This document shows, piece by piece, positions 40,086-64,000 of a stretch of DNA of 64,000 nucleotides. The translations under genes and the position numbers were made by a program. Position 1 is the first letter of the stretch, and each line of letters opens with the position of its first letter. Origin of the DNA: Amphiscolops sp. MND2022 (Eukaryota); the NCBI GenBank assembly GCA_964187785.1, contig OZ076421.1:40238001-40302000 (forward strand), in the 5' to 3' direction. Below the pieces are notes generated by a model. That model saw only the letters and a program-made list of their open reading frames with translations, did not search any database and was not told the DNA's origin.

Positions 40086-41506
40086 CATTACGACGCCAAA
40101 CAGGTAACTTTTGACTGCAACAGATCTGTTGCAGTGTGGTGTGGATTCTTCACATCGATTAATTACGTGGGTTTTCAAGAAATGAGGAAAAAGGAGCGAA
40201 ACAATTTTCTGGATTCTTGCACTAATACCTGCGTATCCTGCGAAGAATCTCCGAAACAAATTCTTCACTGTTTTCCTGAATTCTTGAAATTTTGTGGATT
40301 CTTCGTTTTAGCAATTATTAGGAAATATTAGTTTGCGGGGATTCTTCACTAATTAGGTCACTTATTTGAGGTACTAAATTTTTGTGGATTCTTCGTTTCG
40401 TATGAATTCACAGAAATACCATAAACAAAATTTGTGGATTCCTCCTTTTGTATATGAACAATTTTGTTGATTATGTTGAAATGGTTTTCAAAATAAAAGT
40501 CCCCCGTTTGCCGAATTTTAAAAAATTTCTATTAATTGTAATGAAACAAATGATTTTGTAACGACTCCAGGAGCGTTCAAGTAGAATGTTCAAATTAGTT
40601 AAACCCCCAACCCCAGTTTGTCAAAATTTAAAAAAAATCCTATTTTTAAATGTAATGAAGCATGAAGCAAATAAAATTTTTATCGGTGGATAGAAAGTTC
40701 AAAAATTCTCCTGTTTAAATATAAATATCTCATATAACCAAAAGGTAAATTTGTTGGGGAGATGGATTTCAACTTAGATTTTAATTCCTAAATTACGTCC
40801 CGGGGGACGGGAGAAGGTTCTAAACGTCTCCTGGTTTTTTTAAATAATTTTCTCACATGAAGAAACTTCATATGAACTGTATTGAAACAGTTAATTTTGA
40901 AACAACTCCAGGAGCGCTGAAATAAAAGGTATCAAACACACCCCATGTTTGCCGTTTTTAACATGTAAAATTTTATCCCCAAACACCCCCCCCTTTGGCC
41001 AAATTCAAAAAACCTCATATCACGTGTAGGAGAAGTTACCTTTAGAACGACTCCAGGAGCGGTCCAATAGATTGTATCAAAGACCTCACCCATCCCGCTG
41101 TTTGCCAAATTAAAAAAACTTCATTTCAAGTTTAATGAAATTTAATGTGCCTCACCCAAACTATATATCAATTGTATAGGAAAAACTAATTTTCTAACAA
41201 CTCCAGGAGCGTTCAAATTATTTCAAATATCGCACTGCACCCTGTTCGACAAATTCAAACAAAAATTGTCATAACAATTATAAGGAAACAGTTGAACTGG
41301 TTGTAAATATACCAATTGTTGAAAGACTTACATTCGTTCCTCAAAATTCTTTCATTTACATGTAATGCCTCTTCAGTTTAGACGAGGAAATACATGTATT
41401 CAGCATGACACGCGAGTTTATGTTTGTTATTGTGAATCATCTAGCGGCCTCAGCAATCGAAGTACATGTTTTGAAGTTATTAATCAATCCTTGAATCCTG
41501 GTAATT

Positions 41507-41576
41507 GAGTTGATAACTCCAGTTGATAACTCCAATTGATAACTACAGTTGATAACACCAGTTGATAACTCCAGTT
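41507..41576. repeat. 13-bp tandem repeat (AGTTGATAACTCC) x about 5
   Basis: Directly visible: gagttgataactcc agttgataactcc aattgataactac agttgataacacc agttgataactcc. Confidence 0.85.
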
Positions 41577-41933
41577 CCGAAGCCTGATCAAACTCATCCA
41601 GTCTGAGCTTTCATCAAATAAAGTAAGTTTTTATTTAATTTTTTGTCATTGGAAACACTCTCAATCAACAAAAACAAGAACTGTTACGAATTGTTCATCC
41701 AAATGAGTTAATAATGAAGATATAGAGTATTGTTTTATCAAATGAAAAATAATCAAAAGTTTAATCATGAAGTTGGTTTCCAATGTTTGACAATTTTTAA
41801 AGAAGGTATACAGTATATGGCGTTCATTGAGAGGCGGGTAACATCACGAAGAGCCTTATAAATAAATATACATTTAGTGTTGAAAATTGTGTATGAATTC
41901 ATTATAACATGAATCGTGTATAATTCAAAATAA

Positions 41934-42243
41934 TGACTCCAGGAGCGTTGAGACAGCTAAAGTTATAGATGATTTTAAAGACTTTAATGACTCCCGGAGC
42001 GTTAAGACAGCTAATTTATATATAATATTCAAAACTTTAACTACTCCCGGACCTGGACCAGGAGCGTTAAGACAGCTAAGTTTATATATAATATTCAAAA
42101 CTTTAACGACTCCAGGAGCGTTAAGACAGCTAAATTTATATATGATTTTAAAGACTTTAACGACTCCAGGAGCGTTAAGACAGCTAAATTTATATAAAAT
42201 TCTCAAAATTGCAACGATTACAGGAGCGTTAAGACAGCTAATT
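41934..42243. repeat. About 54-bp tandem array x6, each unit containing ACGACTCCAGGAGCGTT
   Basis: Repeating (a)cgactccaggagcgttaagacagctaaatttatata..aaaacttta units. Confidence 0.9.
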
Positions 42244-42436
42244 GTTTGAGACTGTATTACACAACCTACTAAAGTCAGATGACTTAAAGCGTGGTCGCAT
42301 GAAATAACTGCCAACGTCAATGATAAAAGATTAATCGTTTTTCGTTTGATGAGTTTTTAACTCGAAAATATAACGACTCCAGGAGCGTTGCGAAAAATAA
42401 TTTTTCCAAATTATTAAACAATCTTTTAAAATCCAG

Positions 42437-45400
42437 GAACGGCCGCTCAAGAAGTGCCCCAAATGCTCCTATCAGACAGAGAAACTCTTTAATTTCAACC
42501 GCTATGTTGGAAAATGCGCCGGTGTCGAGACCGAACAGGTTGAAGCCAGAGGAAGTGGTCACTTTTCTTGTGACATGTCTGCTGCTATTGTCAACTAAGG
42601 ATGCCCTCAAAAGGCATCAACGGACTGAAAGCTGCGCTAAGAGGGCAGCGGAGCTAGCAGAATGTCTTTCCCCGCCTCTGAGGAAATACAGTAAGTTATT
42701 CCTCACATAGAAAATGTATGCTGCGCAAAAATATGCTCGTTACAGTAAATAACTGCTCACATTTAACTTGTCTTTTTATCGTTCGATAACTGTGCTAGCG
42801 AAGTAGAAACGTACCGCCTATTATGAAAACTTTCTTGAAAGGCGATGCTATAGTACATATCTTTTAATGTTTCAGAGACTGTAACGGGGACGCTGAAAAG
42901 CAAAACGAGTGACGCGTGTGGTCAGGAGTTTTCATCCCTCAGCAACTTGTTGAGGCACCTTGATCGAGCTCCCCATCACTGATTTCAGCATATGACCTTC
43001 TCAAGAGTCCCCAGAAAGTCAGCCAAGGAAGGCAACTACAGGTAAGGAAAATCAGCCAATATCAAAGAGTTGTTTTTTCAGTTGAACAATTGCAAGGAAG
43101 TCAAAAAATTGTTTTAATGCCTAGAAGAGTTAATTCTGTTCTCAAGGTGAGGATACTTGCCATGGATATAAGAATCTGTCTTTTCACTGAATAAAAATTT
43201 TTATGTATTGTTTTCAAATGTTCTTAGGTACTACGAGCACATCGAGGAGACCAAACAGATTGCCGTCCAAAAGTGCGTTGTGTTGAATGGTTCTGTGGAA
43301 AACCAGTCTAAGAAGGTGCTGAACTACCTGTTACATGGTTTTCTCATCCTATGGAGAGATGCCAAGCAAAATGCTGAAGGCCTAGTGCTTCCGCATGTCC
43401 CCAATGAAGCAGCGACACAGTTTTTGCCTTTAGCAGAGCACATGCTTCGTTACATGGCTAACCTTGATGTCCCCATTGCAGAAAAGTCTGCAAAACTTAA
43501 TAAGGTGAGACTAGAAACTTCAATTCATGGATAACATACTTTTTTGAAAGTTTAAAGATATATACAACATTTATTCTTTTCCGTATGAATGTTTTATGAC
43601 CAGTATTCGGCGTACGTCATTGAGAAACAAGCGAAACACTGGAATGAAGTTTTATTAAAAGTTAAATGGGAGGTTCTAAATACATCTGGGGATTCAAAAA
43701 ATTTACAAGTACACATGCACGACGCTTCAAGGGAAAGATATTTTGTCTTCGATTTTCAGAGGTTGTGCTTTTCCCAATAGAAAATAGAAATCTGTTCCTG
43801 AATATATACATAAATACCGGAACGGAGAATCCACAAAAAATTTACAATCATATTGAGCTTCAAAATCATGAACGATTACCTTCAAAGTAGTTTTGCAATG
43901 GTTTGTCATCCAGCGCTAGATTCTTCACAACATGTTTAATTATTGTTTTCTCAATTCTCCTTCGCTTATGCAGCCATTTTGGAATTGTTTCAGCAGCGAC
44001 ATTTGACCAGAGAAGAATATCTGGTAGAGCAGCGCGCGGAGCCAGAAGCAGCCGAAAAAGATCTGTTCCCGGCGAATGTCATCGACATCACTCTTGGCCA
44101 TGAGGTGATTAAATTCATTGTAAACTTTTGTATATAATACTTTCATCCGTTTTTATCTGTTTTTGTCATTGTTGGTATGAATGAAATACTATGTAGCAAT
44201 AATTCTACTACGGAAACAATTAAGATAAACTCGGTACTTAAACTTAGATCTTTTCACCACCCAGTGCCGTGAAAAATGCCGCAGTACACTCATTTGCGGA
44301 ATCAAAGTTGGCAGCCGGGGTTGAAAACGGGTTCGTGACGTAGAGCTCTTGGAATTACCTGCTGCTTCCGAGCGATCAGTGTGTGACCCCCTGGCACATA
44401 GATTTTGCCAGTACCTGCGTGTTTTATGTGGTCCTCCTTGGGAAAAAAGCTTCCGGCTCGTCGAGCCAACGAGGAAGAACTTGAGGCTTTTCAAGCAGTA
44501 TAGCGAGAATGACCCAAGAAGCTTGTAAGATAATTTTTCTTGTAAAAAAATTGCCTCCCACAAGAACATGATTTTGAAAAAAAAACAGCCAAATGAAACG
44601 TCGAGCCTTTTTTCATCAAAACCGTCTTTATAATAATGTGTGTCATTTAGATCAACATCTTTCGGGGACCTGGAGCAGTTGCAGGGAGGAGGCTGCCACA
44701 GTATCCATGCAAGGGCAGGTGACGCCGTCATTTTACCGTCGAAATGGATTTACTGTGTCGTCAACCATGGCAACTCCGTGGCACTAGGTGCCAATTTCCT
44801 CTGCTGTGGACACAGTGATTTAATTGTCGTTGCCCATTTCGACGAGGACGAGGATACACGGTAAATATTGTACCAAATACTACAAACACATATGCAAAAG
44901 TTGTAACCTGTAACGACTCCGGGAGCATTTTTGCGAATAAGCTGAGAAATGGTATATAACAGCCTCCCCATATTTTTGCGTAACATGAAACGTCTCCCGG
45001 AGCATTTTAAGGGAACAATATTCCAATTTGCATTTTTATAAATGTGTCGCTTCTGATCACGTACTATAACTTAAAGATAATCCACCCTCTAATTACTTAA
45101 TAACTTTATAATACAAAAAGCTCCAATACCCTGTGTTAACTATAGATATCCCTTTTTGGCGACAATGTGGAGTGTAATCCTCTTCAACTATCGCAAGATG
45201 CGAGTGCCTCCCAATGAGCGGTACAGGAGCCTGCTTCAAAAAATGGCTGAAAAGATCAAGGACGAAGAAGCCTCTACTAAACGAGTTAGCGCTATATTTT
45301 ATTTTCAACCTACTGAAAGCGATTCTTGGTAACTTGAATCAACTTTCATGTTATTAACTGAAAGTAATTTTATTGTGACCACTTTTGTAACCATGAATTT

Positions 45401-46142
45401 GTAACCACTTAATTGCAATCGTTTTGTTCTAGGTTCTCCCTGCCTTCAGCATTGAAACACTTATCCTTGAAGCGAATCTACAGATGTACAGCGGAGGCCG
45501 TTTTTGCAGAACGAAATTGAAAGACTTTAAAAAAGCCCCACTGCGCTTCAATGTCAAGGTGGAGGTAAAGGTTGAGCTTGATCACCAAGACACAGTCCCA
45601 GATGTCACTAACGAGCCATATGAAGCTGATGATCTCTCTGAGGCAGTTGATGACCTGACGCTGCTCACGCGGGAGATCATGGATTCACCCCAGCCAATCC
45701 GCAGTTACCAAAGAGGTAACTGTTGTTAACTAAATCGTTTAGCTAGAAACAATGTAATGTGCATTAAATTTTTGTTCCAAACTATACACTCGCTCCTGGA
45801 GTCGTTACAGCCAACTTCAGTTGTCCGAACGACCACACTCTTGTGTTTGCTTTTGCTACCGTAGTCGTTAAATTGGATTTCAGTCATTCGAAGTCCCACT
45901 CGTTAATCTTTAAACCCTCTGTTTAAAAGTCTTCTTTTGAAAATAGTATTCTTTCCTAAATCCGCTTTAACTATGCCTGTGTTACTGTTTCAGATTGGGA
46001 CCTCAAACAAAAGCAGTTCGTATCCTCCTCTCTAACAGTGCAGCGTTGGAAGCAATCTGATTTTAGCAGATTCAAGCACATTGCTGCAATTGCTCCATCA
46101 GCACACGAGTTTAACTGTGCAAGCCGACATTGTGTTGATTAG
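42437..46142 (+). pseudogene. Multi-exon triple zinc-finger + JmjC histone demethylase-like gene (KDM2/KDM7-type JmjC), decayed
   Basis: Exons about 42437-42690, 42876-43041, 43228-43504, 43974-44104, 44248-44524, 44651-44860, 45146-45284, 45433-45715, 45994-46142. GT-AG phases are consistent at each adjacent junction checked; 43505-43973 is unresolved. Motifs: CPKC..FNFNRYVGKC, SCDM..LKRHQRTESC, ACGQEFSSLSNLLRHLDRAPHH; NVIDITLGHE, TPWHIDFASTCVFYVVLLGKK.FRLVEPTRKNLRLF, FGD..ILPSKWIYCV..LGANFL, RYPFLATMW. Contains stops and frameshifts. Confidence 0.85.
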
Positions 46143-47033
46143 AGAGATTTCTATTTATTAGAGAGATTAGAAAGTTTAAAAAGATTCAAGAATAAAATTT
46201 TGCAACAGTTTTTTTTATTCTGGAGTCGCAGCCTGTAGCATTATCGTTGTGAAAAATCCATCAAAGGTACAACTAAATTCAAAGACCACTACCTTTAAAT
46301 TAAACTTACGCATGTTTTATCTAATGCGCAGCTACCAGAGAGGTAACCGTTGTTAACTAAAGCTTTGAGCCAAAAACCATGTATTGTTTATCAAAATTTT
46401 TTTTAAACCTGTACACTCGCTTTCGGAGTCGTTACAGCTGACTTCAGTCGTCCAAACGAACACACTTTTTTTGCCTTCGCTCTGTGTAAAAGACCGCTTT
46501 TAAAAATACTATTCCTTCCTAATTTCAAAAAAATGTAAGTTTTTTTTAAAATTCTGGAGTCGCACAGCCTGTAGCTGTATTGTTGTAAAATATCCATAAA
46601 AACTTACAACTAAATTCGTGGACCACTACCTTCAAATTAAACTTACACATGTTTTATCATCTAATTGCAGATTCTGCATTTTATGGGTAATTAGTATTGC
46701 CTCAATTCTACTGTGCAATTCTATCTCCCAGCGATTGAAATTGTCCTCATGGACCACTACCTTATCACCTAATTATAGATTCTTCACATCATGTGTAATT
46801 ATCAATGCCTCTATTCTACTGTAAAATTCACAACCATGCTTTAAAATTCAAATTAGACGATGAGGGAGTTAATTGAAAAATGATAGGTGTCATTGAAGTG
46901 AGTTTGTCACTTTCCAATTCTTTCAACATAAAAAAATAGAAAGACCCATGTCAGAGAACACTCATTCAACTACCATTCCACCATATCAATCAGTTGCTTT
47001 CTTGCCAAGTCTAAAAACAAAATCGCTCTCAGA

Positions 47034-49316
47034 ATGTCTGAACCTTTGGGAAGTATTTCAATTAACAACGGCGATTTGACCCAATATTCACAAATCAGCC
47101 CTTTTCTAACTCAACCCTTTTCTAAGCAGCCTCCACAACCACTTAACCATGATGCTAATCATCTTTATCATAGCACCCCTGCACCGCTCCAACACAGTAA
47201 CTTCTCCTTCCACGAGTCGTACTTAGGCCATACAATCCCGTGCCCGCCTTATTTCTCTCAAATTGTGGACCCTAAAACATCCCAATGTTATACTCAAAAC
47301 AGCACTTCATCCACGAACTCCAGTGATCAAGCGTGGCTAGAACAGTCTGTTGCAAGTGCGCTTGCTACTAGCACTTGCACCTTGAAGCGCAGTCTCAATT
47401 TTACAGCCAGGAGTTTAACTGAACCAAGAACAAAATTGCCTCGACAGGAATGGTAGGAGAAAGTAGGACCCCGAATTGAGGAGACCGTTCGAGAAATTGT
47501 AGAAGCGATCGACACTTGTGGAGCGCTGACGCTCCAACAACAGTTGGCACTCATCCACGGCATTGTCACCCATCTATACATGTATGCTGAACCCGTCACT
47601 GTGATGGCGTAGAGCATTTTAGCTATGACAGTACATGCCGTCGCCCAAGTTGTGTCACAGCTTGACGAGCTAAGCCAGGACACCGAGCACGAATTGAGCC
47701 TTGAACCATCTTTGGGTAATTGTTTCTTTTTTTGGCAAGCTTGGAGACGAAGTAGAACATTGAATGAAGAGAAACCTACATATTATTAGAAAAATTATGG
47801 TTAAAGAAACTTTTTTAAAAAGGGATCTGTCATGTTACACATTTCTAGAATTGTAAACCTATTGTTTTAGGAAACACTATTCGATCGCAGCATAAGATAT
47901 GCTTTTGGGCGGTGAATGCGATGCTGGTCTATCACCTTGGCGTGAGACCCAATTTCCAGAGGTAAACACCACAAGTGGTCAAGAGGGCGGTCCCACGGGA
48001 CAATGACACCGAAGAGGTGCAAACCGAACTTTTTTTCGTCACTTCCAAGGGAAACACCAACTTTAACCCCAGAAAATATGCAGAAGAGATTATGGACAAG
48101 GTACAGAGTTTTCAACAAAAGTAATTGAACAGTCACTACGCGCAACAGTTATAAACTTTCAAACTTGTTGTTTAGTTTAGTTATTTCATAATTAACTTCT
48201 ACAGCGTCAATTGATTCTTGTGAAACGTTTCGTTGCTCGTTATGTGATTGTATTTGGTTGTAGATGCAAAAGAATTCACGGGAGACAGTGGACAATGTGC
48301 TGCAGGGTTATGCCAACCAAGCACTTCCCCTGCCAACATCCTGCGATGCCGTCTTCAAGAGGAAATCGCACGCCACAGCAGAGATCTGGAAAACTGTCGA
48401 CATGATCTGGGCTGCCGCTAATGAGGTCACTGAACGACAACTGAGCGCCTGTGTGACAAAACGCCTCAATGCGCAGTGTTATGCCCGACAAGTGTTGCGA
48501 GCAAAAGAGTTCATTGCATTTTGCAGCAACAAACGAAATCAAATCAACCCCACCAGGCAGAGGCTCATTGAGTTCTACAGCAAGAACTCCTGGAACACAG
48601 AAGAAGATCTCAAAAAAGTTTGTAATTCCTTAACATCGGAAATCAACCAGTAGTCACACTGCTTTAACAATAACCGCTTGAATACCTAGAGGATGAAAAA
48701 CATAAGTATATCAAGTTACTTTTATTCATTGTTTCTTTAGATATTCAAGATTGTGACTGATCGCCTGAATCCGGAAGCACTACAGACTCCATCAGTTGCC
48801 CCCCGCCACGATGCCTTGTTCCTGCTAGCCCAGCACGATTAGTCGGAGTTTTTCAAGAAGTCAATTGCCAAACGATGCAAGTCGCAGCATTGGCCAGCAA
48901 TCTGCGACGTACAAGTGAAAGATCTTGGTCGTGGGGTGATCACGACGGCGAAGATCTACAAAGGAGAGATTCTGGCTGATTACCACGGGGAAGAGATAAA
49001 AGGAATGAGGTCGAACGAGTTCCTTGACATACCTAGCAACCAAACCGAGTATCTCTTCCAACTAGGCCAGAAACATCTAATCGACGCTTCCAGTGAAGTC
49101 TGCAAGGAGCGTCCGAACAACAGGTGCCTTGTTGGGTTATTCAACCACAAATCGGCCAAAAAAGCAAATGTGAAGCCAGTGCTAACAAATATGGCGCCCA
49201 ACAAAGACGTCCTGGTGTTTTCAGCGAAAACTGAAATCGCTCCCTTCGGATAGCTTCGCTTCGATTATGGCGATGAAGAAGCGAGGCGACTATTGACGAA
49301 TAATTTTTTGTCTTGA
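47034..49316 (+). pseudogene. Multi-exon gene: tyrosine-recombinase-like remnant followed by a SET domain (PR-Set7/KMT5A-like)
   Basis: SET motifs are clear: HWPAI..KDLGRGVITTAKIYKGEILADYHG, YLFQ, LIDAS..C, LFNH, NVKP, VLVFSAKTEIAPFG*LRFDYGD. The YR-like part is only partial: AMLVYHLGVRP and ELFFVTSKG. Several stops. Confidence 0.75.
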
Positions 49317-50988
49317 TAGTAGTTTAGATAACGCAGAAACTGAATTTTAGTTAATTTTCTTGTTTTCCGATGAAAAGTTTTTTTTCAATTAGATATGTTT
49401 ATGGAGTTGCTGGATTAATTAAATTTCGAGGACTGAATGTGCTCGCGGAGTCGTTACGTTGTTTGTAAAGGAGTTGTTGGTTTAGAAAACAAGTGTACTT
49501 CTACCTTCAAAAAACAACTAGCAATGGTTTAAAATTGATCTCTGGATTCTTCGAACAATGCCTTAAAGTTACTTTCTCAATTCTTGGCGCTCATTTTAAG
49601 CGCGAGCTGAGCTAATGCTATTTGAAGAATCCACAAAAATAGCTTAAACAATTGCTCAAAACTAGTGTACTACTTACTACCTACGAATAGTTACCAGCAA
49701 TGATTTAAAATTCACTTCTAGATTCTTCAAACATTGCTTTAAAGTCACTTTCTCAATTCTTAGCGCTAATTTTAAACGCAAACTGAGCTAATGCTATTTG
49801 AAGAATCCACAAAATTCACTGAACTCCTTGCTCAATTTTTGTGTATTGGAGAATTGGAAAGCTGTCGAAAGCTTACGGTCCCTAAATAATTGCTCCCGGA
49901 GTCGTTACAAAATAATGAGAAGGGTCATTTTTGCATCAAAAAAGGAACTAATCGAACTCCACTAAAAGGTACAAAAAAGCCAAGAAATTACCTGACATCA
50001 CGTATTCAGAAGGATCCAAAACACAGCCTTTTTTCTCAACATCTTCAATGTATGTTGCCTTATGGTTTTGAAAAGCTATCAATCAAAAAAATTAAGTTGA
50101 TAAGAGGTTGTCCTCAATCAATCATTACTTTGAACAAAATAAAAAAAATTAACAATTGAACGATCAAACTCGTGTTAGTTTTTATTTGTGTGCAATACAA
50201 CGGCATATGGGGGATGGTAGCGCAGTTGATATTTCACATGGGTATGTAGTGAAGCTATACGCGTTGTCCACCACGGGATCGACTCTCACATAGACACTGT
50301 TTGGCGACTCTATACAGACCACTCTGTATTCCCCACATGTCGATTTGGTGAACGACGTCGTTCCACTTCACAGCGACTGGAGGGCATAATTGAAGATCCA
50401 ATGAACTGCGCTACTGCATCGCTTTTTGATGTGAAAAGGATAAATCATTTGTTGCTCGGTATTTTCCTTTACAGCGATAGGAAGGCACAATTGAAGATCC
50501 AGTGCATCCAGGGGTGTTCAATAAATAATTATGAGTAGGAATAATTGAAATGAATAAAATAAAATAATTTACTTCTACACTCAAATGAACAAAAGTATTT
50601 TTTTGAACCTGTTAGATAAAAGAAAAATAATTGGGTCTTGAGGTAACTAAAACTAACTAAGAACGTTTAGTTCAACATATCGTCAGCCATATAAATTCGA
50701 ATATACAAAAATCTTGAGCTTTCCAGAAATACAATTGTTGAGTACCTTGGGGTACTGACTCAAAAGGTCGAAGAATCCATTCGAAAAACACTGTCTCTGC
50801 GTTTTGGCCTGATTATGGATTTATGGATAGCTAATTTAAACTTTTGTTGAAATCCGTTTTTCGCTGAGAATAAAAATAATTCTTTTAACAAAAAAAAATA
50901 ATAAAATTGTTTAATTTTCCACTATGAAAATAGAATAATTTAATTTTAGGCAACATTAAAATTCGAATAAAATTTTGAACACCTCTGA

Positions 50989-51450
50989 CTGCGTCCCTTT
51001 TTGATGTAAAAAAAGATCAGTTGATCGTTGTTATTTTCATTCACAGCGATAGGGGGGCACTTTGGAAGATCGACCGCGTCTTTTTTTGATGTGGAAAAAG
51101 ATTAGACGATCCTCTGTATTTTCATTCACAGCGATAGGAAGGCACTTTTGAAGATCCACCGCGTCTTTTTTTGATATGGAAAAAGATCAGACGATCCTTG
51201 TTATTTTCCTTCACAGCAATAGGAAGGCACTTTTGAAGATCCACCGCGTCTTTTTTGATGTGGAAAAAGATCAGACGATCATCGTTATTTTCCTTCACAG
51301 CGACAGGAAGGCTTTTTGAAGATCCACCGCGTCTTCTTTTGATGTGGAAAAAGATCAGACGATCCTTGTTATTTTCCTTCACAGCGATAGGAAGGCACTT
51401 TTGAAGATCCACTGCATCCCTTTTTGATCTGAAAAAAGATCAGTTGATTG
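50989..51450. repeat. About 84-bp tandem array 1 (about 5.5 units)
   Basis: Unit gatcagacgatccttgttattttccttcacagcgataggaaggcacttttgaagatccaccgcgtcttttttgatgtggaaaaa. Confidence 0.9.
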
Positions 51451-52284
51451 TTGATAATGATGATTTTTGATGAAAACAGTGCTGTCCAAATTCAGTCAAA
51501 ATCAAAAAGAAATATAAACTATTAATTCAATACAAATTAGCCCAAGAATCCACAAAAATAGCTTAAACAACTGCTCAAAACTATTGTACTACTACCTACG
51601 AATAGTTACCAGCAATGATATAAAATTCATTTCTAGATTCTTCAAACAATGCTTTAAAGTCACTTTTCAATTCTTAGCGCTCATTTTAAACGCAAACTGA
51701 GCTAATGCTATTTGAAGAATCCACAAAATTCACTGAACTACTTGCTCAATTTTTGTGTATTGGAGAATTGGAAAGCTGTCGAAAGCTTACGGTCCCTGAA
51801 TAATTGCTCCCGGAGTCGTTACAAAAAAATGAGAAGGGTCATTTTTGTATCAAAAAAAGGAACTAATCGAACTCCACTAAAAGGTACGAAAAAGCAACGA
51901 ATTTTTTTGAACCTGTTAAATAAAAGAAAAATAATTGGGTCTTGAGGTAACTAAAACTAACAAAGAACGTTTAATTGAACATATCGTCAGCCATATAAAT
52001 TCGAATATACAGAAATCTTGAGCTTTCCAGAAATACATTTGTTGAGTACCTTGGGGTACTGACTCAAAAGGTCGAAGAATCCATTCAAAAAAACACTGTC
52101 TCTGCGTTTTGGCCTGATCATGGATAGCTAATTCAAACTTTTGTTGATATCCGTTTTTCGCTGAGAATAGAAATAAATCTTTTAACAAAAAAAATAACAG
52201 AATTGTTCATTTGTCCACTATGAAAATAAAATATTTCAATTTTAGGCAACAATAATATTCGAATAAAATATTGAACACCTCTGA

Positions 52285-53000
52285 CTGCATCCCTTTTTGA
52301 TGTAAAAAAAGATCAGTTGATCGTTGTTATTTTCCTCCACAGCGATAGGAAGGCACTTCTGAAGATCCACTGCATCCCTTTTTGATGTGAAAAAAAATCA
52401 GTGGATCGTTGTTATTTTCATTCACAGCGATAGGAAGGCACTTTTGAAGATCCACCGCGTCTTTTTTTGATGTGGAAAAAGATCAAACGATCCTTGGTAT
52501 TTTCATTCACAGCGATAGGAAGGCACTTTTGAAGATCCACCGCGTCTTTTTTTGATATGGAAAAAGATCAGACGATCCTTGTTATTTTCCTTCACAGCGA
52601 TAGGAGGGCACTTTTGAAGATCCACCGCGTCTTTTTTGATGTGGAAAAAGATCAGACGATCGTTGTTATTTTCCTCCACAGCGATAGGAAGGCACTTTTG
52701 AAGATCCACTGCATCCCTTTTTGATGTGAAAAAAATCAGTGGATCGTTGTTATTATAATTCACAGCGATAGGAAGGCACTTTTGAAGATCCACCGCGTCT
52801 TTTTTTGATGTGGAAAAAGATCAGACGATCCTTGGTATTTTCATTCACAGCGATAGGAAGGCACTTTTGAAGATCCACCGCGTCTTTTTTGATATGGAAA
52901 AAGATCAGACGATCCTTGTTATTTTCCTTCACAGCGATAGGAAGGCACTTTTGAAGATCCACTGCATCGCTTTTTGATCTGAAAAAAAGATCAGTTGATT
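52285..53000. repeat. About 84-bp tandem array 2 (about 8.5 units)
   Basis: Same unit as 50989-51450, with length variation in the T-run. Confidence 0.9.
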
Positions 53001-53230
53001 GTTGGTAATGATGATTTTTGATGAAAACAGTGCTGTCCAAGTTTAGTCAAAATCAAAAAGAAATATAAACTATTAATTCAATATAAATTAGCCCAAGAAT
53101 CCACAAAATTAGCTTAAACAACTGCTCAAAACTAGTGTACTACTACCTACGAATAGTTCCCAGCAATGATTTAAAATTCACTTCTAGATTCTTCAAACAA
53201 TGCTTTTTTTCAGCTCCAATTTCCATTACC

Positions 53231-53829
53231 TGTAAGTGCCGTCCTTGGCCGACTTTCTGGGGAACCGTGAGAAGTTCATATCCTTGAACCTGTGATGCGG
53301 CGCTCGCTCCAGATGGCGCAGCAAATTGCTCCGGGAAGAAAACTGCTGTCCACACCCCTCACAGCTCGTTGACTTGAGTTTCTCTGTTACAGTCTCTGGA
53401 ATAAAGCAAAAACCAACTTAAAACATGGGCGTTACATTTCAATACCGCAAGCACAACTATCAAATTGTCATTAATATCTTTAAAGTATGAAAGATTCTTG
53501 TAACCTTATGATTTGTAACAAAACCGTTTCTGTAGATAGGTTTGTATTGAGATCAGTAACTTAGTGTAATTTTTCAGGGCTGGGGAGTGACCTTGAGTCA
53601 ATTCCCTTGCCCTCTTGGCACAGCTCTGCGTCTGCTGATGGCGTTTGAGAGCGTCATTTGTCGACACAGGTTGTAAACACACGTCGCAACTGAAGCAACC
53701 ACTTCCGCTCGCCACCTCCGGCACCGGCTTGGGCCCTTGGCATTTTTGAACGTGTCTGTTGTAGTTAAACAACCTGGTCGACTCGTAAGAGCACTTGGGA
53801 CACTTCATCTGGGCTTTTGACGGCTCTTT
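53231..53829 (-). pseudogene. Inverted paralogue of the zinc-finger exons of the JmjC gene
   Basis: MKCPKCSYESTRLFNYNRHVQKC..CDVCLQPVSTNDALKRHQQTQSC, then exon 53397-53231 SCEGCGQQFSSRSNLLRHLERAPHH. Intron positions match 42437-43041; the first donor reads CTAAGT instead of GTAAGT. Confidence 0.85.
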
Positions 53830-53933
53830 CTGGATTTTAAAAAGAAATCAATATTTTTGTTTATTTGGTTTTCTCACGTTCCGTTTCCTAACTTCCTTAT
53901 ATTCATCACGATCATGGAGCCGTTACAACCACC

Positions 53934-54667: not shown

Positions 54668-55020
54668 TTTGTTTACATGACGCACCAATTTCTGCGCGTC
54701 ATGGTCACGTGACAAAAAGTGCATCTAATTCCAAGTACATGTAACGTTTTTGGATCAAGCGAGATATTTTGTTTTCATGACGCAATAAATTCTGCGCGTC
54801 ATGGTCACGTGACAAAAAGTTCATCTAATTCCAAGTACATGTAACGTTTTTGGATCAAGCGATATATTTTGTTTACATGACGCAATAAATTCTGCGCGTC
54901 ATGGTCACGTGACAAAAAGTTCATCTAATTCCAAGTACATGTAACGTTTTTGGATCAAGCGATATATTTTGTTTACATGACGCACTAAATTCTGCGAGTC
55001 ATGGTCACGTGACAAAAAGT
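54668..55020. repeat. 100-bp tandem repeat x3.5 with palindromic E-box GTCACGTGAC
   Basis: ATGGTCACGTGACAAAAAGT occurs at 54701, 54801, 54901 and 55001. Each unit also has a CATGACGC..GCGTCATG hairpin (one mismatch in the last unit). Confidence 0.95.
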
Positions 55021-55526
55021 TCTTTAAAGATTTGTAGAGATTTTAGAGATTTGTAAAGAGCAAGGGAGGAAATGAGTAAAAAAAATGAATGAATTCACGA
55101 AAAAATTCCAATTTCATAAATCCTTTCACGAACCATGCCGGGACTGAACGAAATTTTCACCGAACGGAACCGAAAGTATCAGAGATGATGTGACGTCATA
55201 AAAAACTATATTGACTTCAATGTAGTTAACGAATGAAAATGCTCACATCAATACAATCTATTTGAACGCTCCTGGCTTCGTTACGAAAGGAAGTGTTTCA
55301 TTAAAATGATATTAGGTTTTCCAAGTTTAACAATTGGAGGGAGGAGGATTTTTGATACATTTTCTTTGCTTCTGGAGTCGTTACAAAATCATCAATATAA
55401 ACACAAGTTCATTGAACATTTGAATCATCAAAATAAAAAACGTTAGGAAACGAAGTTTGTTCATTATTAGTTTGCACAGTTGAAGTCTCAAGTTGATCAA
55501 ATGTGGGCGAGGGATGTTAGTATAGA

Positions 55527-57480
55527 AAACAAGTGTACTACTACCTTCGAATAACAACTAGCAATGGTTTAAAATTGATCTCTAGAGTCTTCAAACAATG
55601 CTTTAAAGTTACGTTCTCATTTCTAGAGCGCTTTCTAAATGCGAGCTGAGCTGATGGTGTTCGAAGAATCCACAAATTTCACTAAACTACTTGCTCAATT
55701 TTTGTGCGCAGGAGAATTTGAACTGATGAAACTGAATAGTGATTTGAAAACGTTTCAAATTTGAACATTTTAAATTATTACAGACGGACGTTACATGTCT
55801 CATGCGGAGAAAAGTGTTATAAATTGTTCCTTTTTGGCCTATTTTACTTGAAAAGAGCCACATATGTATCGTCTGGTTGCTCTTTTGCTCTTGCTCGTTT
55901 GCGCGAAAGTTTCAAGGAAGTAATCGAAGATCTGTAATCACCGTCTGATGCTCCGGCGTTTCTCTGTCTCTCAATTAATGAGCGTTGATCGTTGACACAA
56001 GCTGGCTTGATTGTATCATTACGTGACATCACGTATTCGGAAAGATCCAAAAAACAGCCTTTTTTTCAACATCTTCAATGTATGTCACCTTTATAAATTT
56101 CAAATCAGTGGCGGCAAATTAAATTCCCTGCATATTCTGGCTGTTCCTTGAGCTGCTGCTTTTTTCATTGTTTTCGATGCAGCCGGTTTTCGTTGAGTTG
56201 TCGACGTACATGTGTCGCTGTCCGATTCAGAAGCCGCGCATTGCTCACTCCGAGTTGCCCTGAGTAATTCAGTGTCGACTTTAAACACAACAAAACACTT
56301 TGGGGTTGAAGAATGACGCTTAGATAGACCAAGAGCTTTGTCCTTACTCAACACCTTCCCCCAAACGGGTAATTGTATCCTCTAGTGCTTTTGCAGAAGT
56401 TCCAGAGAAGTGTCCAACCACGTGAAACCGAAGTCCACTCAACAACCTGCATGAATCACGAGTTGCACCTCTTCTTTAATGGCAGGCTTGACAACATTTT
56501 TGCAGATTTCAAAATAAGTTGTAGTTGGCTCGTATTCTATTTGAAGTTGGGTAAACAAATCGCTCACTGCTATTTTTTGTGTTTCAAAACTATGTCGAGA
56601 TAATGCCAGTAAGAAAAAAACCTTCATAAAGTAAAGAATCAGGGTTATACAGTTTCCCTCCGCCTCGCATCGTTTTTGTTTGGAAATCCTTGTGTGCGTG
56701 TTGGTTTGATTTCTACATCGCCTCACACATGTGGTGCCAGGGACTACGAACAAATCCTGCCTGCATTATTTTAGGTACTAGCATCATTTTCAATTTAGAG
56801 GGTGTCAGACCTTCTTTTCCGGAAAAAAAAGCAGCGATGACTGGCAGTATGTCTCTGACCAGAACTTGAATTGCTCCACGTCTAGTCCGTGTTTGGATGA
56901 CCGCAAAACGGTGGCACATTTGTTTAGACTTCCTTGTAAAAGATTCGCGCAACCGTTTGTTGTGAACTGGTCAGATTTCGCTAGACTAGGGTGCATTTGT
57001 TTGAGAACTGCAAAAGCGTTGGTGGTGGCACGTGTAATTTCTTTGTCTGTGTTGTTGTTTATGTTCTCAAAAAAAACTTTTTCCCCATACGTTCTCGAAA
57101 AGTTTCGGAATATCTTGCCCAAGTTCATCTTTGTCAGCGATAGCAACTGGCGCTGAAGTACCTGATAGCGATACAGGTCCAACAACCCCTTTTTTCAAAT
57201 TGTTTCCTTTCACTTGCAGGTCAAACTGGAATCTGGGATTTTTCATCGCCCTTCGAGTGCAGTTATCTTCCAATTGTTGTAAGGCCACTTTGTATAGCGA
57301 TTTCTCGTTTACTATTTTCTGTGCTGCTTTGCGAAGGTCACTCTCTACACACCTTGTGATCTTATGCGTAACGTCTGACATGACAAATCTTATATCCTCA
57401 AGGTACACTAGAGAATTTTGTGGAACTTTGTTTCTGAAAGGCGCTTCGAGATTGTGGCGCAATCCAGTGTTTTTATCCAC
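55527..57480 (-). pseudogene. Tandem duplicate (1,964-bp period) of the 3' half of the transposase locus
   Basis: ORFs at 55844/56100/56373/56805 recur at 57808/58064/58337/58769, an offset of 1964. The copy breaks off at ..GTTTTTATCCAC (57480). Confidence 0.9.
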
Positions 57481-58553
57481 ACCTTGCTCAAAACGAGTGT
57501 AATACTACCTACAATTAGTAACCAGTAATGGTTTAAAATTGATCTCTAGATTCATCAAACAATGCTTTAAAGTTACGTTCTCTATTCTAGGGCGCTTTCT
57601 AAACGCAAGCTGAGCTAATGCTATTCGAAGAATCCACAAATTTCACTAAACTACTTGCTCAATTTTTGTGTGCTGGAGAATTTGAACTGATGAAACTGAA
57701 TATTGATTTGAAAACGTTTCAAATTTGAACATTTTAAATTATTACAGACGGACGTTACATGTCTCATGCGGAGAAAAGTGTTATAAACTGTTCCTTTTTG
57801 GCCTATTTTACTTGAAAAGAGCCACATATGTATCGTCTGGTTGCTCTTTTGCTCTTGCTCGTTTGCGCGAAAGTTTCAAGGAAGTAATCGAAGATCTGTA
57901 ATCACCGTCTGATGCTCCGGCGTTTCTCTGTCTCTCAATTAATGAGCGTTGATCGTTGACACAAGCTGGCTTGATTGTATCATTACCTGACATCACGTAT
58001 TCGGGAAGATCCAAAAAACAGCCTTTTTTTCAACATCTTCAATGTATGTCACCTTTATAAATTTCAAATCAGTGGCGGCAAATTAAATTCCCTGCATATT
58101 CTGGCTGTTCCTTGAGCTGCTGCTTTTTTCATTGTTTTCGATGCAGCCGGTTTTCGTTGAGTTGTCGACGTACATGTGTCGCTGTCCGATTCAGAAGCCG
58201 CGCATTGCTCACTCCGAGTTGCCCTGAGTAATTCAGTGTCGACTTTAAACACAACAAAACACTTTGGGGTTGAAGAATGACGCTTAGATAGACCAAGAGC
58301 TTTGTCCTTACTCAACACCTCCCCCCAAACGGGTAATTGTATCCTCTAGTGCTTTTGCAGAAGTTCCAGAGAAGTGTCCAACCACGTGAAACCGAAGTCC
58401 ACTCAACAACCTGCATGAATCACGAGTTGCACCTCTTCTTTAATGGCAGGCTTGACAACATTTTTGCAGATTTCAAAATAAGTTGTAGTTGGCTCGTATT
58501 CTATTTGAAGTTGGGTAAACAAATCGCTCACTGCTATTTTTTGTGTTTCGAAA

Positions 58554-60751
58554 CTATGTCGAGATAATGCCAGTAAGAAAAAAACCTTCATAAAGTAAAG
58601 GATCGGGGTTATACAGTTTCCCTCCGCCTCGCATCGTTTTTGTTCGGAAATCCTTGTGTGCGTGATGGTTTGATTTCTCCATCGCCTCACACATGTGGTG
58701 CCAGGGACTACGAACAAATCCTGCCTGCATTATTTTAGGTACTAGCATCATTTTCAATTTAGAGGGTGTCAGACCTTCTTTTCCGGAAAAAAAAGCAGCG
58801 ATGACTGGCAGTATGTCTCTGACCAGAACTTGAATTGCTCCACGTCTAGTCCGTGTTTGGATGACCGCAAAACGGTGGCACATTTGTTTAGACTTCCTTG
58901 TAAAAGATTCGCGCAACCGTTTGTTGTGAACTGGTCAGATTTCTCTAGACTAGGGTGCATTTGTTTGAGAACTGCAAAAGCGTTGGTGCTAGCACGTGTA
59001 ATTTCTTTGTCTGTGTTGTTGTTTATGTTCTCAAAAAGAACTTTTTCCCCATACGTTCTCGAAAAGGTTCGGAATATCTTGCCCAAGTTCATCTTTGTCA
59101 GCGATAGCAACTGGCGCTGAAGTACCTGATAGCGATACAGGTCCAACAACCCCTTTTTTTCAAATCGTTTCCTTTCACTTGCAGGTCAAACTGGAATCTG
59201 GGTTTTTTCAACGCCCTTCGAGTGCAGTTATCTTCCAATTGTTGTAAGGCCACTTTGTATAGTGATTTCTCGTTTACTATTTTCTGTGCTGCTTTGCGAA
59301 GGTCACTCTCTACACACCTTGTGATCATATGCGTAACGTCTGGCATGACAAATCTTATATCCTCAAGGTACACTAGAGAATTTTGTGGAACTTCTTTTCT
59401 GAAAGGCGCTTCGAGATCGTGGCGCAATCCAGTGTTTTTATCCACATCTGTAGGAAAAAACTTTTCAAATCCCATATATAGAGCCAAATCAGACGGGTAC
59501 AGGTTCGATGCATCGCTGTCTATCGCCAGTATGAGACGATACAGAAAAGTATTGTCGCCGGAACACGTAACCACCGCCCCTTGTGTGCTTAACTCTTTTG
59601 TTTGCTTGTACAGCCATCCCGTCTCCTGTTTTCCAGCTATATCTTGCCCCAAACTTTGCTCCAGTACCAATTTGCTATCTTTTCCTCGGAGAACTAAACA
59701 AAACGACTTTAAAAAATACCTATCAGAAGAATTTGGACAAAATTGTCTAGATTGTGTACATTGAAAAGATTTCAAATCATACGGTGAAATAGATAGTAGA
59801 ATTGAGGAACAAAGAAGTACACATGATGTGAAAAATCTTTGATTGGATGAGAAAACATGTGAAAAAATAAATTGAAGGTAGTGGTCATGAATATATACTA
59901 ATGTCATACTTTTATGGAATCTTCAAAACAAAAAAACTGCTAGGTTAATTGATAATAAAAAGCATATTGCTAACTTAACACTGAAGCAAAACGTTATGCT
60001 TAATGACTGTGCTGTGATTTTCTCCGAGAAATCCTGTAAAAATCGGAAACACATCCTTGTGTGATCAATACCACCAATTTCACAGCTGTCACCCCACAAA
60101 TCAAAGTTCAGCCCCGATATCTTTTCTCTTCCGTAAAGAATCCATGCTGCAAACTTGACACATGATACCAAATCACAACGGAATCCTGAGAATGTGGCTT
60201 CAGGCTTACATACGGAAATGAAGTTTTCAATGATACGACTCTGGTATCTCTGGACTGCACGGTAGGATGGTACGATGTTTTGGAGTTTTCCTTTTTCATT
60301 TATTTTCAAATTCGAAGAGATAGTCAACAGCAAGTCTTCTGCTTTGCCTGGTTTGAGGGAAATCGCAAAATTGGAAGATATTGCTTCTCGCGATTGCAAG
60401 TTTGGGAAAAGTTTTTTAATAACAGACTTCAAATACTCTGAAATTGACAGTGTTTCTTTTTGCGTGAAGCAGAACATACTTCCAATGAATAAATGGCCTT
60501 CTTTGAAGTCCCACTGCTCCTTGCCTTCGCGGAACAATGCTAGTAGTAGCATGTTTGTTTCCTGGCTCAGTTGACTCATCTGCTTCAGCTTGTGTGACAG
60601 TTGTTCTGCGTGCCACTTGGTTTAGTGGAGTTGATTTTACTTCTTGGTTACAAGTCGGAAACAAATCTACGCCCATCAGTTCAATGATGACTTCCCTTCG
60701 AGCATTTGTCCATGGGAGATTTTTCCCACCACTCAGTACGATCAGTTTCAT
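58554..60751 (-). pseudogene. DDE transposase, RAG1/Transib/Chapaev(CMC)-like, probable intron about 59965-59685, frameshifted
   Basis: Ordered motifs FDLWGDSCEIGG (D1), VTCSGDNTFLYRL (D2), MPDVTHMITRCVESDL, GLTPSKLKMMLVP..WHHMCEAMEKSNH..F.TKT.RGGG (E). These parallel RAG1 CDG / GYDEK / DALH / ITNY..HVP / EGNESGN. Frameshifts lie at homopolymer runs. Confidence 0.75.
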
Positions 60752-61583
60752 CGTATGTGCCTCGATAAAAACCGAGTGTTTTTTCTGAGTGTCTTTTTTC
60801 CAATTAATGATGAGGTCTTCGGACTACAACGAGGCTCCACAAATGACATAATTTGTCAATTTTGATCTTCTCGATATTTTTTAGTTTCAGTTACTATCAG
60901 AAATTTTTCTATCAGGTTATAATCAATATATTGAATGTTGTATATTACTATTGAATTCTCGTTCCAAAGCTCCATAGTGTTCGATTTTCAAAGTTGCTCA
61001 GATTTAATTCGATATGATGAGTGGATCAATTGCTGTTCATTGATGTGTTGAATGTTTTGGCATTCTGTGATTATACATTATGTTGAAGGAGATTATAAGA
61101 ATGTTGAATTTGAAGTAGAAAGAGAGTTCGACAGCTTGTCCTAATCCTAAAAGTGAGGATGAACGCTCAGCTTATCAAACAGACTCAGTTATTAACTGGA
61201 TTTCATTTTGATTAGTTATTTTCATTGATGCCTGTAAAATTTGAGTCCCACGACTTCATTCTAAGTTTGAGCTTACCGTCGAGTATACGTCCAGTGTGAG
61301 ACTCAATTTTACTCTCAGTGTAAGACTCAAATTTTACACGCAGTTTTCAAAACTTCTCAATGCGTATCATTTGACTTTGAATTTCGCTAGTTTCCACTAT
61401 CAACAATTCAGCATCCCAGATTGCAATTCAGTGTCCAATTTTCACAATGCTGTCGAAACAGTTCGAAATAAATGAAATTGTCGATGCTATCGACGAATGT
61501 TTTCTTTGGTGGCCAGCAGAGATTATTAAATTTAATGGAGAATGGGAAGTAGTTGTTCGCTGGATAGAATTTGGAAATAAAAG

Positions 61584-62981
61584 TTGACAACAACCATCCC
61601 CAGCACTATCAGAAAAACATCAGAGAAAGGGAATATCCGGAAAACAAAAGTCACGCCCCAATCATTGCCCTGTAAAAGAAGCCGCGATAAAAAAATTCAG
61701 CTGGATTATAGAGCCAAATTCCAATCCCGTGGTGGCACAATAAGGTTTCGCCAGGGAGATACTGTGCAAAAAGGCTTCGTCTTCATCAATGGCACTGTAC
61801 TCCAAGAAATGGAGATACTTGAGGAAGACGAATACAAAAAATGGGAAAAATCTACTGAGGAGTACGATAAACTGACGACTAATTTCAGAACACTGCGAAT
61901 AAGATACAATGACCTGCGGAGATTGGCAGCGCCAGTGAACACTGGCATGGAGGAGAAGGACGATTGCTCAGATGAAAGTGATGCCGAAAGTATTCAGATG
62001 AGTCAGTCAAAAAAGCAGACAAAGGTCGCGAGGCACAAGAAGAAAACCCCGGTCGATATGATCTCCATGATACCTGTAAGTCTAAAGTATTGAAACTAAT
62101 AATCTTTGATTCTCATATGAAACAGAGAGCAGCCTTCCGATTATATTACTCGCTCATTGAGTCGTTACCTTTTTACAATAGAAATGATGTTTATTAATAA
62201 CTAGACATTCCTGGGGTCGTTACGATGTTAAAACGGAAATTTTAGGTTTGTTTGTTTTTTTTTTGAAGGAAGTGATTATTGGGTTTTGTTTCAGAAGTCT
62301 ACCGACGAAGTTCAGCTTATCTTGTTTCCATGTGTGAAAGATATTTTGCATGAAGGTGGCAGATTCCTGGACCACTGTGGCCAACCAGCTATAATTCGCA
62401 GCCTCACGCTGATATGGAGAAAAGAACAACCTCTCGTTCTCGTTACAATGGACTCGGAGCAAGGCGAGGACGTTTTAGTCACCATGCCCTCGACGAAAGT
62501 TGTATTCGAGGAGGAGAATTTTATGAGCAACACAACTCATGAAAATTTAATTGGATGCGTCGAACACCCTGTTAGTAGGGTGTGCTCGCTGTTTGCAGCT
62601 GTGAAAATCGCCTTTGGAATCGCCTTGTTGTCGCGTACTGGGTATGCAGGGATCTTATCTGTTGCGAATGATCTTTCCACAACAGCCCTTGGAATAGAAA
62701 ACAATAACGACGTGGCATTCCAGTTATCAATTCCCGCAGAAGAAAAAGGATCCCATGAGTCATGGGAAACTGTGTTGGGCAAACTGTGGGACAGGAAGGC
62801 TGGCAGTTATAGCGAGACAGACAAATTAATCAAGTCGATGATATTCATGATAAAAAAATCTTTTGCTGTATCGTTGATAAAATGCAGCGTTGTAGTAATC
62901 GGTGGTGTTTACCCAGTCACGAAGTACAGGAAGATCATTCGACAAAATATGGCTGCAGATATGGAAGAAAACTTCCTGTAG
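61584..62981 (+). CDS. Unknown spliced accessory gene, divergent from the transposase
   Basis: ORF 61584-62075 ends CCT|GTAAGT and ORF 62295-62981 begins TTTCAG|AAG, both phase 0. Basic N-terminus, coiled-coil-like and acidic middle; no family recognised. Confidence 0.6.
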
Positions 62982-64000
62982 TTCACGATGTATTGCAGTT
63001 AATTCTTTTTAAAAATTTTTTAGTTTTCAAATTTTTAAAAGATTGTTTTTTCATTGTAATCAAATCCTTTTGTGCTGCATGGAACAATTATAAAATAAAA
63101 TATTCTCCTCGTTTGACAGTTGAAAGTATGAAAAAGGTATTAAAAGCGATACACGCTCCTGGAGTTGTTATATTGTTAATTTTGAAATGTTGTTTAAAGT
63201 ATAAATATTTCAACAAAAAACTCTGAAAATGACAATTTGAACCTATGTCTCATTGTGACGAAATCCTATTCTTTTTAAAATCATGCGTTCTTGTAGAAAA
63301 GCAAACAGGGTTGAAACTGAATTACAATGAGTCACGATATACAAAGCTCAACAAATGAATCAAGTAGCAAAAATCAGGCACAATGAGAAAATAAAAAAAA
63401 TTCCGAAAGTCAACGGTTGTCTTAATCAAAATAGCACTAGCTGCGAAGACTATCAATTCGGGTGATTCACCTAACGCGCCATCACACATCAGCCACCCCA
63501 AAAAATATCAGTTTGACAGGGTCAGAAACAAAAACATATACCGATCAAAATTCTCTTTTTTTTCCAAATCAAAACGTATCTTATCGAACAAAAATCAGTT
63601 CTCGAGCTTAGAAATGTCCTGAATTTGAAATCCTAGGCTTTCATTAAAATTGTTCGGTCAAAAATACAGAAGTCCAAAAGGGTGTCTCGAAAAGAATTGT
63701 AGTACTGAAAACAATACTATACTACTGAAAGTATTTCTACATTGTCAGTAAAATTTTAATTTGAACTTTGTTCGTTGAAAGACAGCAACGAGGTTATGGA
63801 AGAATCCGGAAAACGTTGAAAAATTCAAGAATATACGAAGAATCTTTACAGCAGTTGTTAGGCATGTTACCATATCTTATTATGATTGTGAAGATTCCAC
63901 CAAAAATATTTGAAAATAATTGCTTTGTGAAGACTCCAAGAAAACTTGTGAAGAATCCAGGAGAGCTTGTGAAGAATAAAGAAAATTTTGAAGAATTAAC

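Follow-up and report, generated by a model that had tools for sequence, protein, structure and literature searches.

The stretch analysed here, called the window in the following, comprises 64,000 nucleotides of Amphiscolops sp. MND2022 (assembly GCA_964187785.1, contig OZ076421.1, positions 40,238,001 to 40,302,000 of the forward strand). A single class II (cut-and-paste) transposon extends from position 40086 to a point 243 bp beyond the end of the window, inserted in the pol gene of a long terminal repeat (LTR) retroelement. It contains a zinc-finger and JmjC gene (ZnF-JmjC), a SET gene, a transposase gene and a fourth conserved gene, ORF-X, together with subterminal and internal repeats. 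The coordinates of these features are collected in Table 1.

An initial annotation of the window had proposed a single giant mobile unit of more than 24 kb, whose terminal inverted repeat (TIR) interrupts a Gypsy pol at 40,086, and had predicted that a right TIR, a TC target-site duplication (TSD) and the resumed retroelement pol would follow beyond the window. All three were found in L001, the 20 kb directly downstream: the right TIR CCTGTTTGGCGTCGTAATG at L001:225-243 is followed by TC and by the continuation of the interrupted retroelement. The element is therefore 24,158 bp long and extends to window-equivalent position 64243. For an empty-site test, we joined 300 bp of the left flank (ending in TC) to 300 bp of the right flank, so that a single TC remained. 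This construct aligns to five other copies of the retroelement with 83-88% identity and without a gap at the junction, demonstrating that the insertion was precise and duplicated 2 bp. Matched TIRs, the precise empty site and the colinear copies described below all bear out the proposed single unit. The interrupted retroelement encodes an aspartic protease, a reverse transcriptase and RNase H and hence an LTR-type pol; the label “Gypsy” goes beyond this evidence. The retroelement (window 38161-40085, L001:246-2000) is itself degenerate, with stops in pol; the genome contains at least 286 candidate copies of its family.

The 19-nt TIR CATTACGACGCCAAACAGG occurs three times as an exact match in the window, at 22059 on the plus strand, at 23730-23748 on the minus strand and at 40086 on the plus strand, with none expected by chance. 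Across the 1.07-Gb genome, 341 forward and 360 reverse matches with at most two mismatches were found, compared with 3 and 3 for a reversed control. As first annotated, the 1.7-kb element bounded by the same TIR (22059-23748, 1.69 kb) matches both ends of the 24-kb element. From the genome-wide TIR matches we took ten TIR-to-TIR intervals for comparison. Three of them are full length (21.8, ∼22, and 28.5 kb) and colinear with the window element over its whole length; they are 97.6-98.7% identical to each other and ∼89% identical to the window copy. Six, of 5.7-8.7 kb, have retained both ends but suffered internal deletions, and the interval C2:30750464-30759201 is pieced together from end fragments, its flanks (AG/AA) being mismatched. 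In two cases, a pair of derivatives from different loci shows 98.6-98.8% identity, indicating that deleted forms moved recently.

Of eight intact copies examined at other loci, seven have matching 2-bp TSDs, which makes nine copies if the TC of the window element and the CA of the small element are included; the 2-bp sequences in the other copies are GC, TA, AA, CT, CC, AT, TA and AT. The exception is the ∼22-kb copy, which has an extra 328-bp end fragment on its left edge. At this locus (L003:51-380; G000:C5:18745095-18745424), a solo right-end fragment abuts the complete element, leaving two ends in tandem, which explains the mismatched flanks. Two sister subfamilies with ends related to those of the window element were also identified, one of 18.9 kb with the TIR CATTACGAGGCCAAAGTGGG and the TSD TC, the other of 19.9 kb with the TIR CATTACGACGCCAATCGGGG. 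Since the full-length copies and the sister subfamilies are all large, large size is a property of the lineage. The termini CATTACG...CGTAATG (5′-CA...TG-3′) are common to the window copy, ten other copies and the two sister subfamilies. The expectation that TIR-bounded copies genome-wide would share gene content was borne out in the full-length copies and the sister subfamilies.

Some of these copies show peculiarities of their own. Four derivatives (L015-L018, 5.7-7.7 kb) have lost nearly everything except the two ends and the ZnF-JmjC gene; since two of them occupy different loci yet are 98.6% identical, they were mobilised after the deletion. The 28.5-kb copy (L009-L011, G000:C4:77872491-77901151) has an internal duplication of ∼5.6 kb and hence two copies of the ZnF-JmjC gene. 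Synonymous divergence between the window element and this copy, which represents subfamily B, is 0.09 for the transposase, 0.15 for ORF-X, 0.26 for SET and 0.38 for JmjC, a mosaic pattern that suggests recombination between subfamilies. Contigs of the DNA sequencing runs X1-X4 over L010:2700-8700 contain joints that skip 347, 739, and 1,174 bp, as would be expected if the sequenced individual carried additional deletion derivatives.

Table 1. Features of the transposon, its insertion site and its derivatives. Positions refer to the window unless another sequence is named.
Feature	Position	Strand	Remarks
Non-autonomous derivative, 1,690 bp	22059..23748	.	TIRs identical; TSD CA; inverted relative to the large element; shortest derivative
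Interrupted LTR-type retroelement pol, left part	38161..40085	+	Right part from L001:246
Left target-site duplication copy, TC	40084..40085	.	Right copy at L001:244-245, outside the window
Left terminal inverted repeat CATTACGACGCCAAACAGG	40086..40104	+	Partner L001:225-243(-), window-equivalent 64225-64243
Left subterminal region, five copies of GTGGATTCTTC (one mismatch allowed)	40105..40770	.	
Multi-exon C2H2 zinc-finger and JmjC (KDM2/7-like) gene	42401..46139	+	Broken in the window copy
ZnF-JmjC conserved blocks	42401-42707, 42854-42979, 43172-43531, 43940-44134, 44344-44525, 44637-44861, 45960-46139	+	
Gene with N-terminal conserved domain and KMT5A/SETD8-like SET	47457..49253	+	In-frame TAG 49251-49253
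SET gene conserved blocks	47457-47609, 47849-48121, 48264-48650, 48843-49250	+	
Four related motif-bearing repeat units of ∼170-390 bp	49486-49871, 51544-51785, 55526-55722, 57485-57686	.	Between genes
85-bp tandem repeat, two arrays	50991-51443, 52294-53007	.	
Partial duplicate, in inverted orientation, of the 5′ zinc-finger part of ZnF-JmjC	53229..53847	-	
Downstream copy of the 1.96-kb tandem duplication	55526..57484	-	Decayed 3′ transposase fragment, stop in CEAMEKSN
Transposase gene, RAG1/Transib-like DDE core and BRCT-like tail	57823..60781	-	Several frameshifts in the window copy
ORF-X, fourth conserved gene	61381..62978	+	Divergent from the transposase gene
ORF-X conserved blocks	61381-61584, 61581-62090, 62232-62978	+	
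Right subterminal repeat region	63750..64000	.	Continues beyond the window to the right TIR (L001:225-243)
Derivatives L015-L018	G000: C1:41242462-41250288, C2:46891227-46897637, C5:50098934-50105344, C3:56226725-56232578		

The core of the transposase is marked by the motifs DLWGDSCEIGG, TCSGDNTF, PDVTHMITRCVE and CEAMEKSNHH, and its intact relatives have one intron or none. No Pfam transposase family matches the window exons, three intact paralogs (1,003-1,253 aa) or nine distant homologs, and sequence and profile searches of the PDB with HMMER returned nothing relevant, a similarity to RAG1 being undetectable by these means. Relatives are rare: only 114 are present in 1.84 billion representative proteins, a word-indexed search returned 32, none of them named, and a search of the ESM Atlas with the transposase exon gave no usable lead. 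We modelled residues 215-770 of the intact 1,003-aa paralog L026:3226-6234:- with AlphaFold2 (AF2), based on a 36-sequence alignment, and obtained a predicted local distance difference test score (pLDDT) of 84 and a predicted template modelling score of 0.85. When this model was compared with the PDB by Foldseek, the top 46 matches were all RAG1, HzTransib of Helicoverpa or BbRAGL of amphioxus, with E-values down to 1e-7 and a template modelling score of ∼0.5; the next match was the P-element transposase. It is this fold, as modelled by AF2 and matched by Foldseek, and the fold alone, that supports the DDE transposase of the initial annotation and places it in the CACTA-Mirage-Chapaev-Transib (CMCT) clade. 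In the 36-sequence alignment, D318/D322, D405, H480, E487, E700 and E703 are invariant or nearly so. The Cys-pair and His-pair zinc motifs of the CMCT clade are absent from this alignment, in which H480 and H697 are the only conserved Cys or His positions between D405 and E703.

Judged from sequence comparison, the transposase probably carries a BRCT tail. Two distant homologs match BRCT_2 in this region (E 5e-4 to 7.5e-4, 20-21 bits, below the cutoff of 27.3), the homolog P0020 has a precomputed PF16589 annotation, and a BRCT-like block is conserved in the alignment; a Pfam search of the tail of the L026 paralog returned no BRCT match. A distant relative of 1,301 aa, ∼35% identical and with a hint of BRCT_2, is located on L038, a 10.4-kb Logan contig of ERR15087781. 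It lies head-to-head with a 419-aa KMT5A-like SET gene, and its neighbor on the other side encodes 452 aa without a recognisable domain.

The presence of a combined zinc-finger/JmjC gene, already annotated, was verified by several matches. A C2H2 finger was confirmed in the window by Pfam, and the PDB entries nearest to the JmjC exon are KDM7, KDM2A and PHF8. In an intact paralog, two halves of the domain match positions 1-52 and 79-114 of the Pfam JmjC profile, the second half reaching 25.2 bits on the intact exon, compared with a curated cutoff of 24. The iron-binding triad HxD...H is present in subfamilies B, 2, 3, 4 and 5 (WHIDF and WIHCV). What had been taken for a second zinc-finger gene proved to be a partial duplicate, in inverted orientation, of the 5′ region of this gene.

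For the SET gene, the Pfam SET profile is matched with E 2e-6 in the window and with E 4e-11 in subfamily 3 (sf3), and a profile of the family finds KMT5A/SETD8 as its nearest PDB entry (E 1e-13). In subfamily B, the SET motifs are intact (NHKS...EELRFDYGD; PFEELRFDYGD). The initial annotation had described this gene as combining SET with a tyrosine recombinase (YR) remnant, of which only the SET part was sustained: upstream of SET, no recombinase similarity was found with Pfam at E 10 or among PDB recombinases by profile, and an ESM Atlas search with the pre-SET domain gave no usable lead. The pre-SET motifs ELFFVNSxGK and RQxxQRYxRQ resemble YR boxes by eye only, without statistical support. 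The remaining gene, previously noted as unknown, is conserved in the relatives and was named ORF-X. A profile of its possibly Tudor-like N-terminus retrieved no Tudor domain from the PDB, and an ESM Atlas search with ORF-X gave no usable lead.

A recurring DNA motif had been described as a link between these genes. In agreement with this, GAAGAATCCAC with at most one mismatch has 24 matches in the window, compared with 1.6 expected; the 24-kb element accounts for 16 of the 24 and the 1.7-kb derivative for four. Both ends are enriched in the motif, which occurs on the minus strand on the left and on the plus strand on the right, and further clusters of it lie between the genes. The left subterminal region is common to the 1.7-kb derivative and all other copies. 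CACTA elements carry subterminal protein-binding repeats, and the motif pattern of the window element resembles these. Besides the 85-bp repeats, there are several further tandem arrays inside the 24-kb element. On the minus strand, the 85-bp arrays (window 50991-53046) can be read as long open frames of repetitive sequence (KRDAVDLQKCLPIAVKENN...), which are probably non-coding.

The window copy is an old, dead member of its family, in which all three recognisable enzymes are broken. In the SET gene, an in-frame TAG (49251-49253) replaces a Glu codon and removes the ELRFDY catalytic tail. The ZnF-JmjC gene has a frameshift in an A-run near 44440-44450, within the HxD exon of JmjC, and a probable frameshift in the finger exon. 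The third iron ligand of JmjC is Tyr in the window copy (KWIYCV) and His in every other subfamily, indicating that Tyr is a private mutation of this dead copy; a PHF2/Epe1-like “HxD...Y” variant of JmjC was considered and ruled out for the same reason. The transposase gene shows several frame changes, some of them clearly in homopolymer runs. Since subfamily B is open over the same stretch, with a single exon of 571 aa, these changes are frameshifts, and a many-intron gene structure, the other explanation considered for the window copy, was ruled out. Finally, a tandem duplication of 1.96 kb (units 55526-57484 and 57485-59443), with a boundary within the transposase exon, is specific to the window copy, the other full-length copies having a single unit.

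To what extent the genes belong together can be judged from the relatives of the element. In a genome census of transposase, SET and JmjC exons, the three were found within ∼5-15 kb of each other in several subfamilies, whose identity to the window copy is ∼90, 82, 68, and 46-50% for the transposase, 87, 68, 54, and 39% for SET and 85, 74, 55, and 42% for JmjC. ZnF-JmjC, SET, transposase and ORF-X are all linked in at least four subfamilies (transposase 46-90% identical), and an exon-by-exon comparison with four relatives delimited conserved blocks of ZnF-JmjC, of pre-SET plus SET, of the transposase and of ORF-X. The closest relative, sf3, has the same gene order and orientation; sf4 and sf5b have the same genes in another arrangement. 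We determined the ratio of nonsynonymous to synonymous substitution rates (dN/dS) by the Nei-Gojobori method for the window copy versus one other subfamily at a time. The values are 0.14 (JmjC), 0.18 (SET), 0.12 (transposase) and 0.20 (ORF-X) versus subfamily 2, and 0.18, 0.25, 0.58, and 0.34 in the same order versus subfamily B. These ratios indicate that purifying selection has acted on the cargo genes with roughly the same strength as on the transposase. Distant relatives of the transposase also adjoin a SET gene in contigs from three other samples, one of which contains JmjC exons as well.

Linkage across subfamilies together with purifying selection indicates that the cargo genes are components of the element and not captured passengers. 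The initial annotation had regarded the enzymes as captured; instead, their association is long-standing, being retained down to 46% transposase identity and under purifying selection. Where Pack-type capture of fragments would be recognised by the opposite, we found whole genes, preserved linkage and low dN/dS. That the cargo consists of passenger fragments of host genes, captured Pack-style and without function for the element, is therefore very improbable. Large CACTA-type elements of plants often hold such fragments, and the genes of the window copy are indeed broken, but this reading is at odds with linkage in subfamilies as distant as 46% transposase identity, dN/dS values of 0.12-0.25, the intact catalytic motifs of younger copies and the SET genes next to distant transposase relatives in other samples. 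It is hardly credible that the 24 kb represent a chance nest of unrelated elements between two solo ends, an idea to which the interior tandem arrays, the inverted partial duplicate and the 1.96-kb tandem duplication might lend some color. At three other, full-length loci, the same TIRs enclose this content in colinear order, with matching 2-bp TSDs at two of the loci and the extra left end fragment at the third; sister subfamilies carry the same gene set, sf3 even in the same layout, and the empty site is precise.

Conserved linkage and purifying selection through deep diversification argue that the chromatin genes work for the element, and, as far as their sequences tell, the family probably edits chromatin for its own benefit. 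Our preferred reading, to which we assign a probability of about 0.6, is that of one transposon from a four-gene family of 19-28 kb, represented in the window by a dead copy, whose chromatin genes serve the element mainly by counter-silencing, a role that the initial annotation had raised as a possibility. Most likely, the enzymes would keep the element's own chromatin permissive. The zinc fingers would bring the JmjC demethylase to the repeated motif of the element, where repressive histone methylation would be removed. A second mark would be written or read by the SET enzyme and ORF-X, while the transposase would bind the subterminal motifs and cut in the manner of RAG1/Transib.

Several observations weigh against this proposal. 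The SET gene fits it poorly, since H4K20me1, the mark of KMT5A-type enzymes, is no obvious anti-silencing mark, and the window copy itself is incapable of the proposed functions. Enzyme activity, substrates and DNA-binding specificity are predicted only. A search of sequencing runs with the element sequence yielded no RNA run; the four runs found are DNA-like, with even coverage of exons and introns and joints of the deletion type only. At least one of the outside contigs, the one with JmjC exons (L037), seems to belong to the same species or a close relative. For ORF-X, the AF2 model was poor (pLDDT 52) and Foldseek gave nothing below E 0.1; its weak matches include small beta-barrel and BAH/Tudor-type domains, which we did not count as evidence.

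In the main rival reading, the chromatin genes might instead serve the transposition reaction, with H4K20 methylation placed at the break by the KMT5A-like enzyme and a BRCT transposase recruiting host repair, or with the enzymes steering the choice of target site. Cleavage of the RAG1/Transib type leaves hairpinned flanks that are repaired by end joining, H4K20 methylation and 53BP1 act in end joining, and a similar repair-linked role has been proposed for the SET domain of SETMAR. The RAG1-like fold of the transposase, the weak but repeated BRCT_2 matches with the conserved BRCT-like block in its tail, and a SET domain nearest to KMT5A/SETD8 (E 1e-13 by profile) would suit such a role; it leaves a KDM2/7-like demethylase with zinc fingers without an obvious job, however, and the BRCT matches are under the Pfam cutoff. 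We therefore consider it rather unlikely. Purifying selection and conserved linkage are equally compatible with enzymes that restrain or hide the element, for instance through a mark that confines its expression to the germline or targets it to heterochromatin, and that are kept because the cost to the host falls. The established tie of KMT5A-type marks to compaction speaks for such self-restraint. The one insertion site considered, that of the window copy, lies in another repeat. We regard this explanation as improbable.

With a histone methyltransferase-like and a demethylase-like gene co-inherited with a RAG1-fold transposase and under selection, the family offers a testable system for the manipulation of histone methylation by a mobile element. 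Hundreds of TIR-bounded repeats in the genome belong to it, and many JmjC- and SET-like gene predictions stem from it, which annotation pipelines would take for host genes. We found no published description of the family in the literature. Our literature searches encountered neither a JmjC gene nor a writer and eraser pair in any DNA transposon (Repbase Reports and Dfam were outside this search), and those on JmjC or SET in CMC or other animal DNA transposons yielded only the oomycete SET and fungal TET cases. Only tentatively, and with more doubt than confidence, do we suggest that the family is an undescribed branch of superfamily rank, RAG1/Transib-like, without the zinc site and with a BRCT tail, that needs a self-encoded writer and eraser of histone methylation, with ORF-X perhaps as a reader. 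If true, transposons would long have coupled RAG1-type cleavage directly to chromatin marks, and the RAG1-RAG2 recombinase would not have invented this strategy. The family also provides a new outgroup for tracing how RAG1 and its connection to chromatin reading (the RAG2 PHD domain and H3K4me3) originated.

Among known systems, the CMCT clade is defined by CA..TG termini, a TSD of 2-5 bp and C(2)C and H(3-4)H motifs, among other features (PMC12730594). The element shares with it the CA..TG termini, a 2-bp TSD, arrays of subterminal repeats, the RAG1/Transib-like DDE core, large size and internally deleted derivatives. In contrast to CMCT elements, it encodes a transposase with a BRCT-like tail, in which the C(2)C and H(3-4)H motifs are missing and which none of the Pfam transposase families matches; its termini are CATTACG, not CACTA or CACAGTG, and it has three further conserved genes. 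The CACTA/CMC assignment of the initial annotation thus holds in a broad sense, for termini, TSD, repeat-rich subtermini and fold, but not for the signature zinc motifs. RAG1, Transib and ProtoRAG (BbRAGL) are the best structural matches, with ∼550-650 aligned columns. RAG1 has a similar spacing of acidic residues and a similar E-G-x-E-x-x-N motif around the last catalytic Glu. Unlike these systems, the element has a TSD of 2 bp instead of 5 bp, no heptamer-like (CACAGTG-like) terminus, no zinc-ligand pairs in its transposase and no recognisable RAG2-like partner.

Transposons with their own epigenetic enzymes are rare and known mainly from fungi (TET/JBP), oomycetes (SET) and plants (VANC). 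Examples cited in PMC12730594 are the SET genes of Phytophthora HarbingerS and MuDR elements, TET/JBP in Kyakuja-Dileera-Zisupton, Plavaka and other elements of fungi, and VANC in VANDAL of Arabidopsis. As in all of these, a DNA transposon keeps a gene for chromatin or DNA modification, presumably for its own epigenetic state; unlike them, the present family combines a methyltransferase-like, a demethylase-like and a fourth gene in a RAG1-like element. SETMAR/Metnase likewise ties a SET domain to a cut-and-paste transposase, but there a host fusion joins SET with a domesticated mariner, whereas here a separate KMT5A-like SET gene resides in mobile elements.

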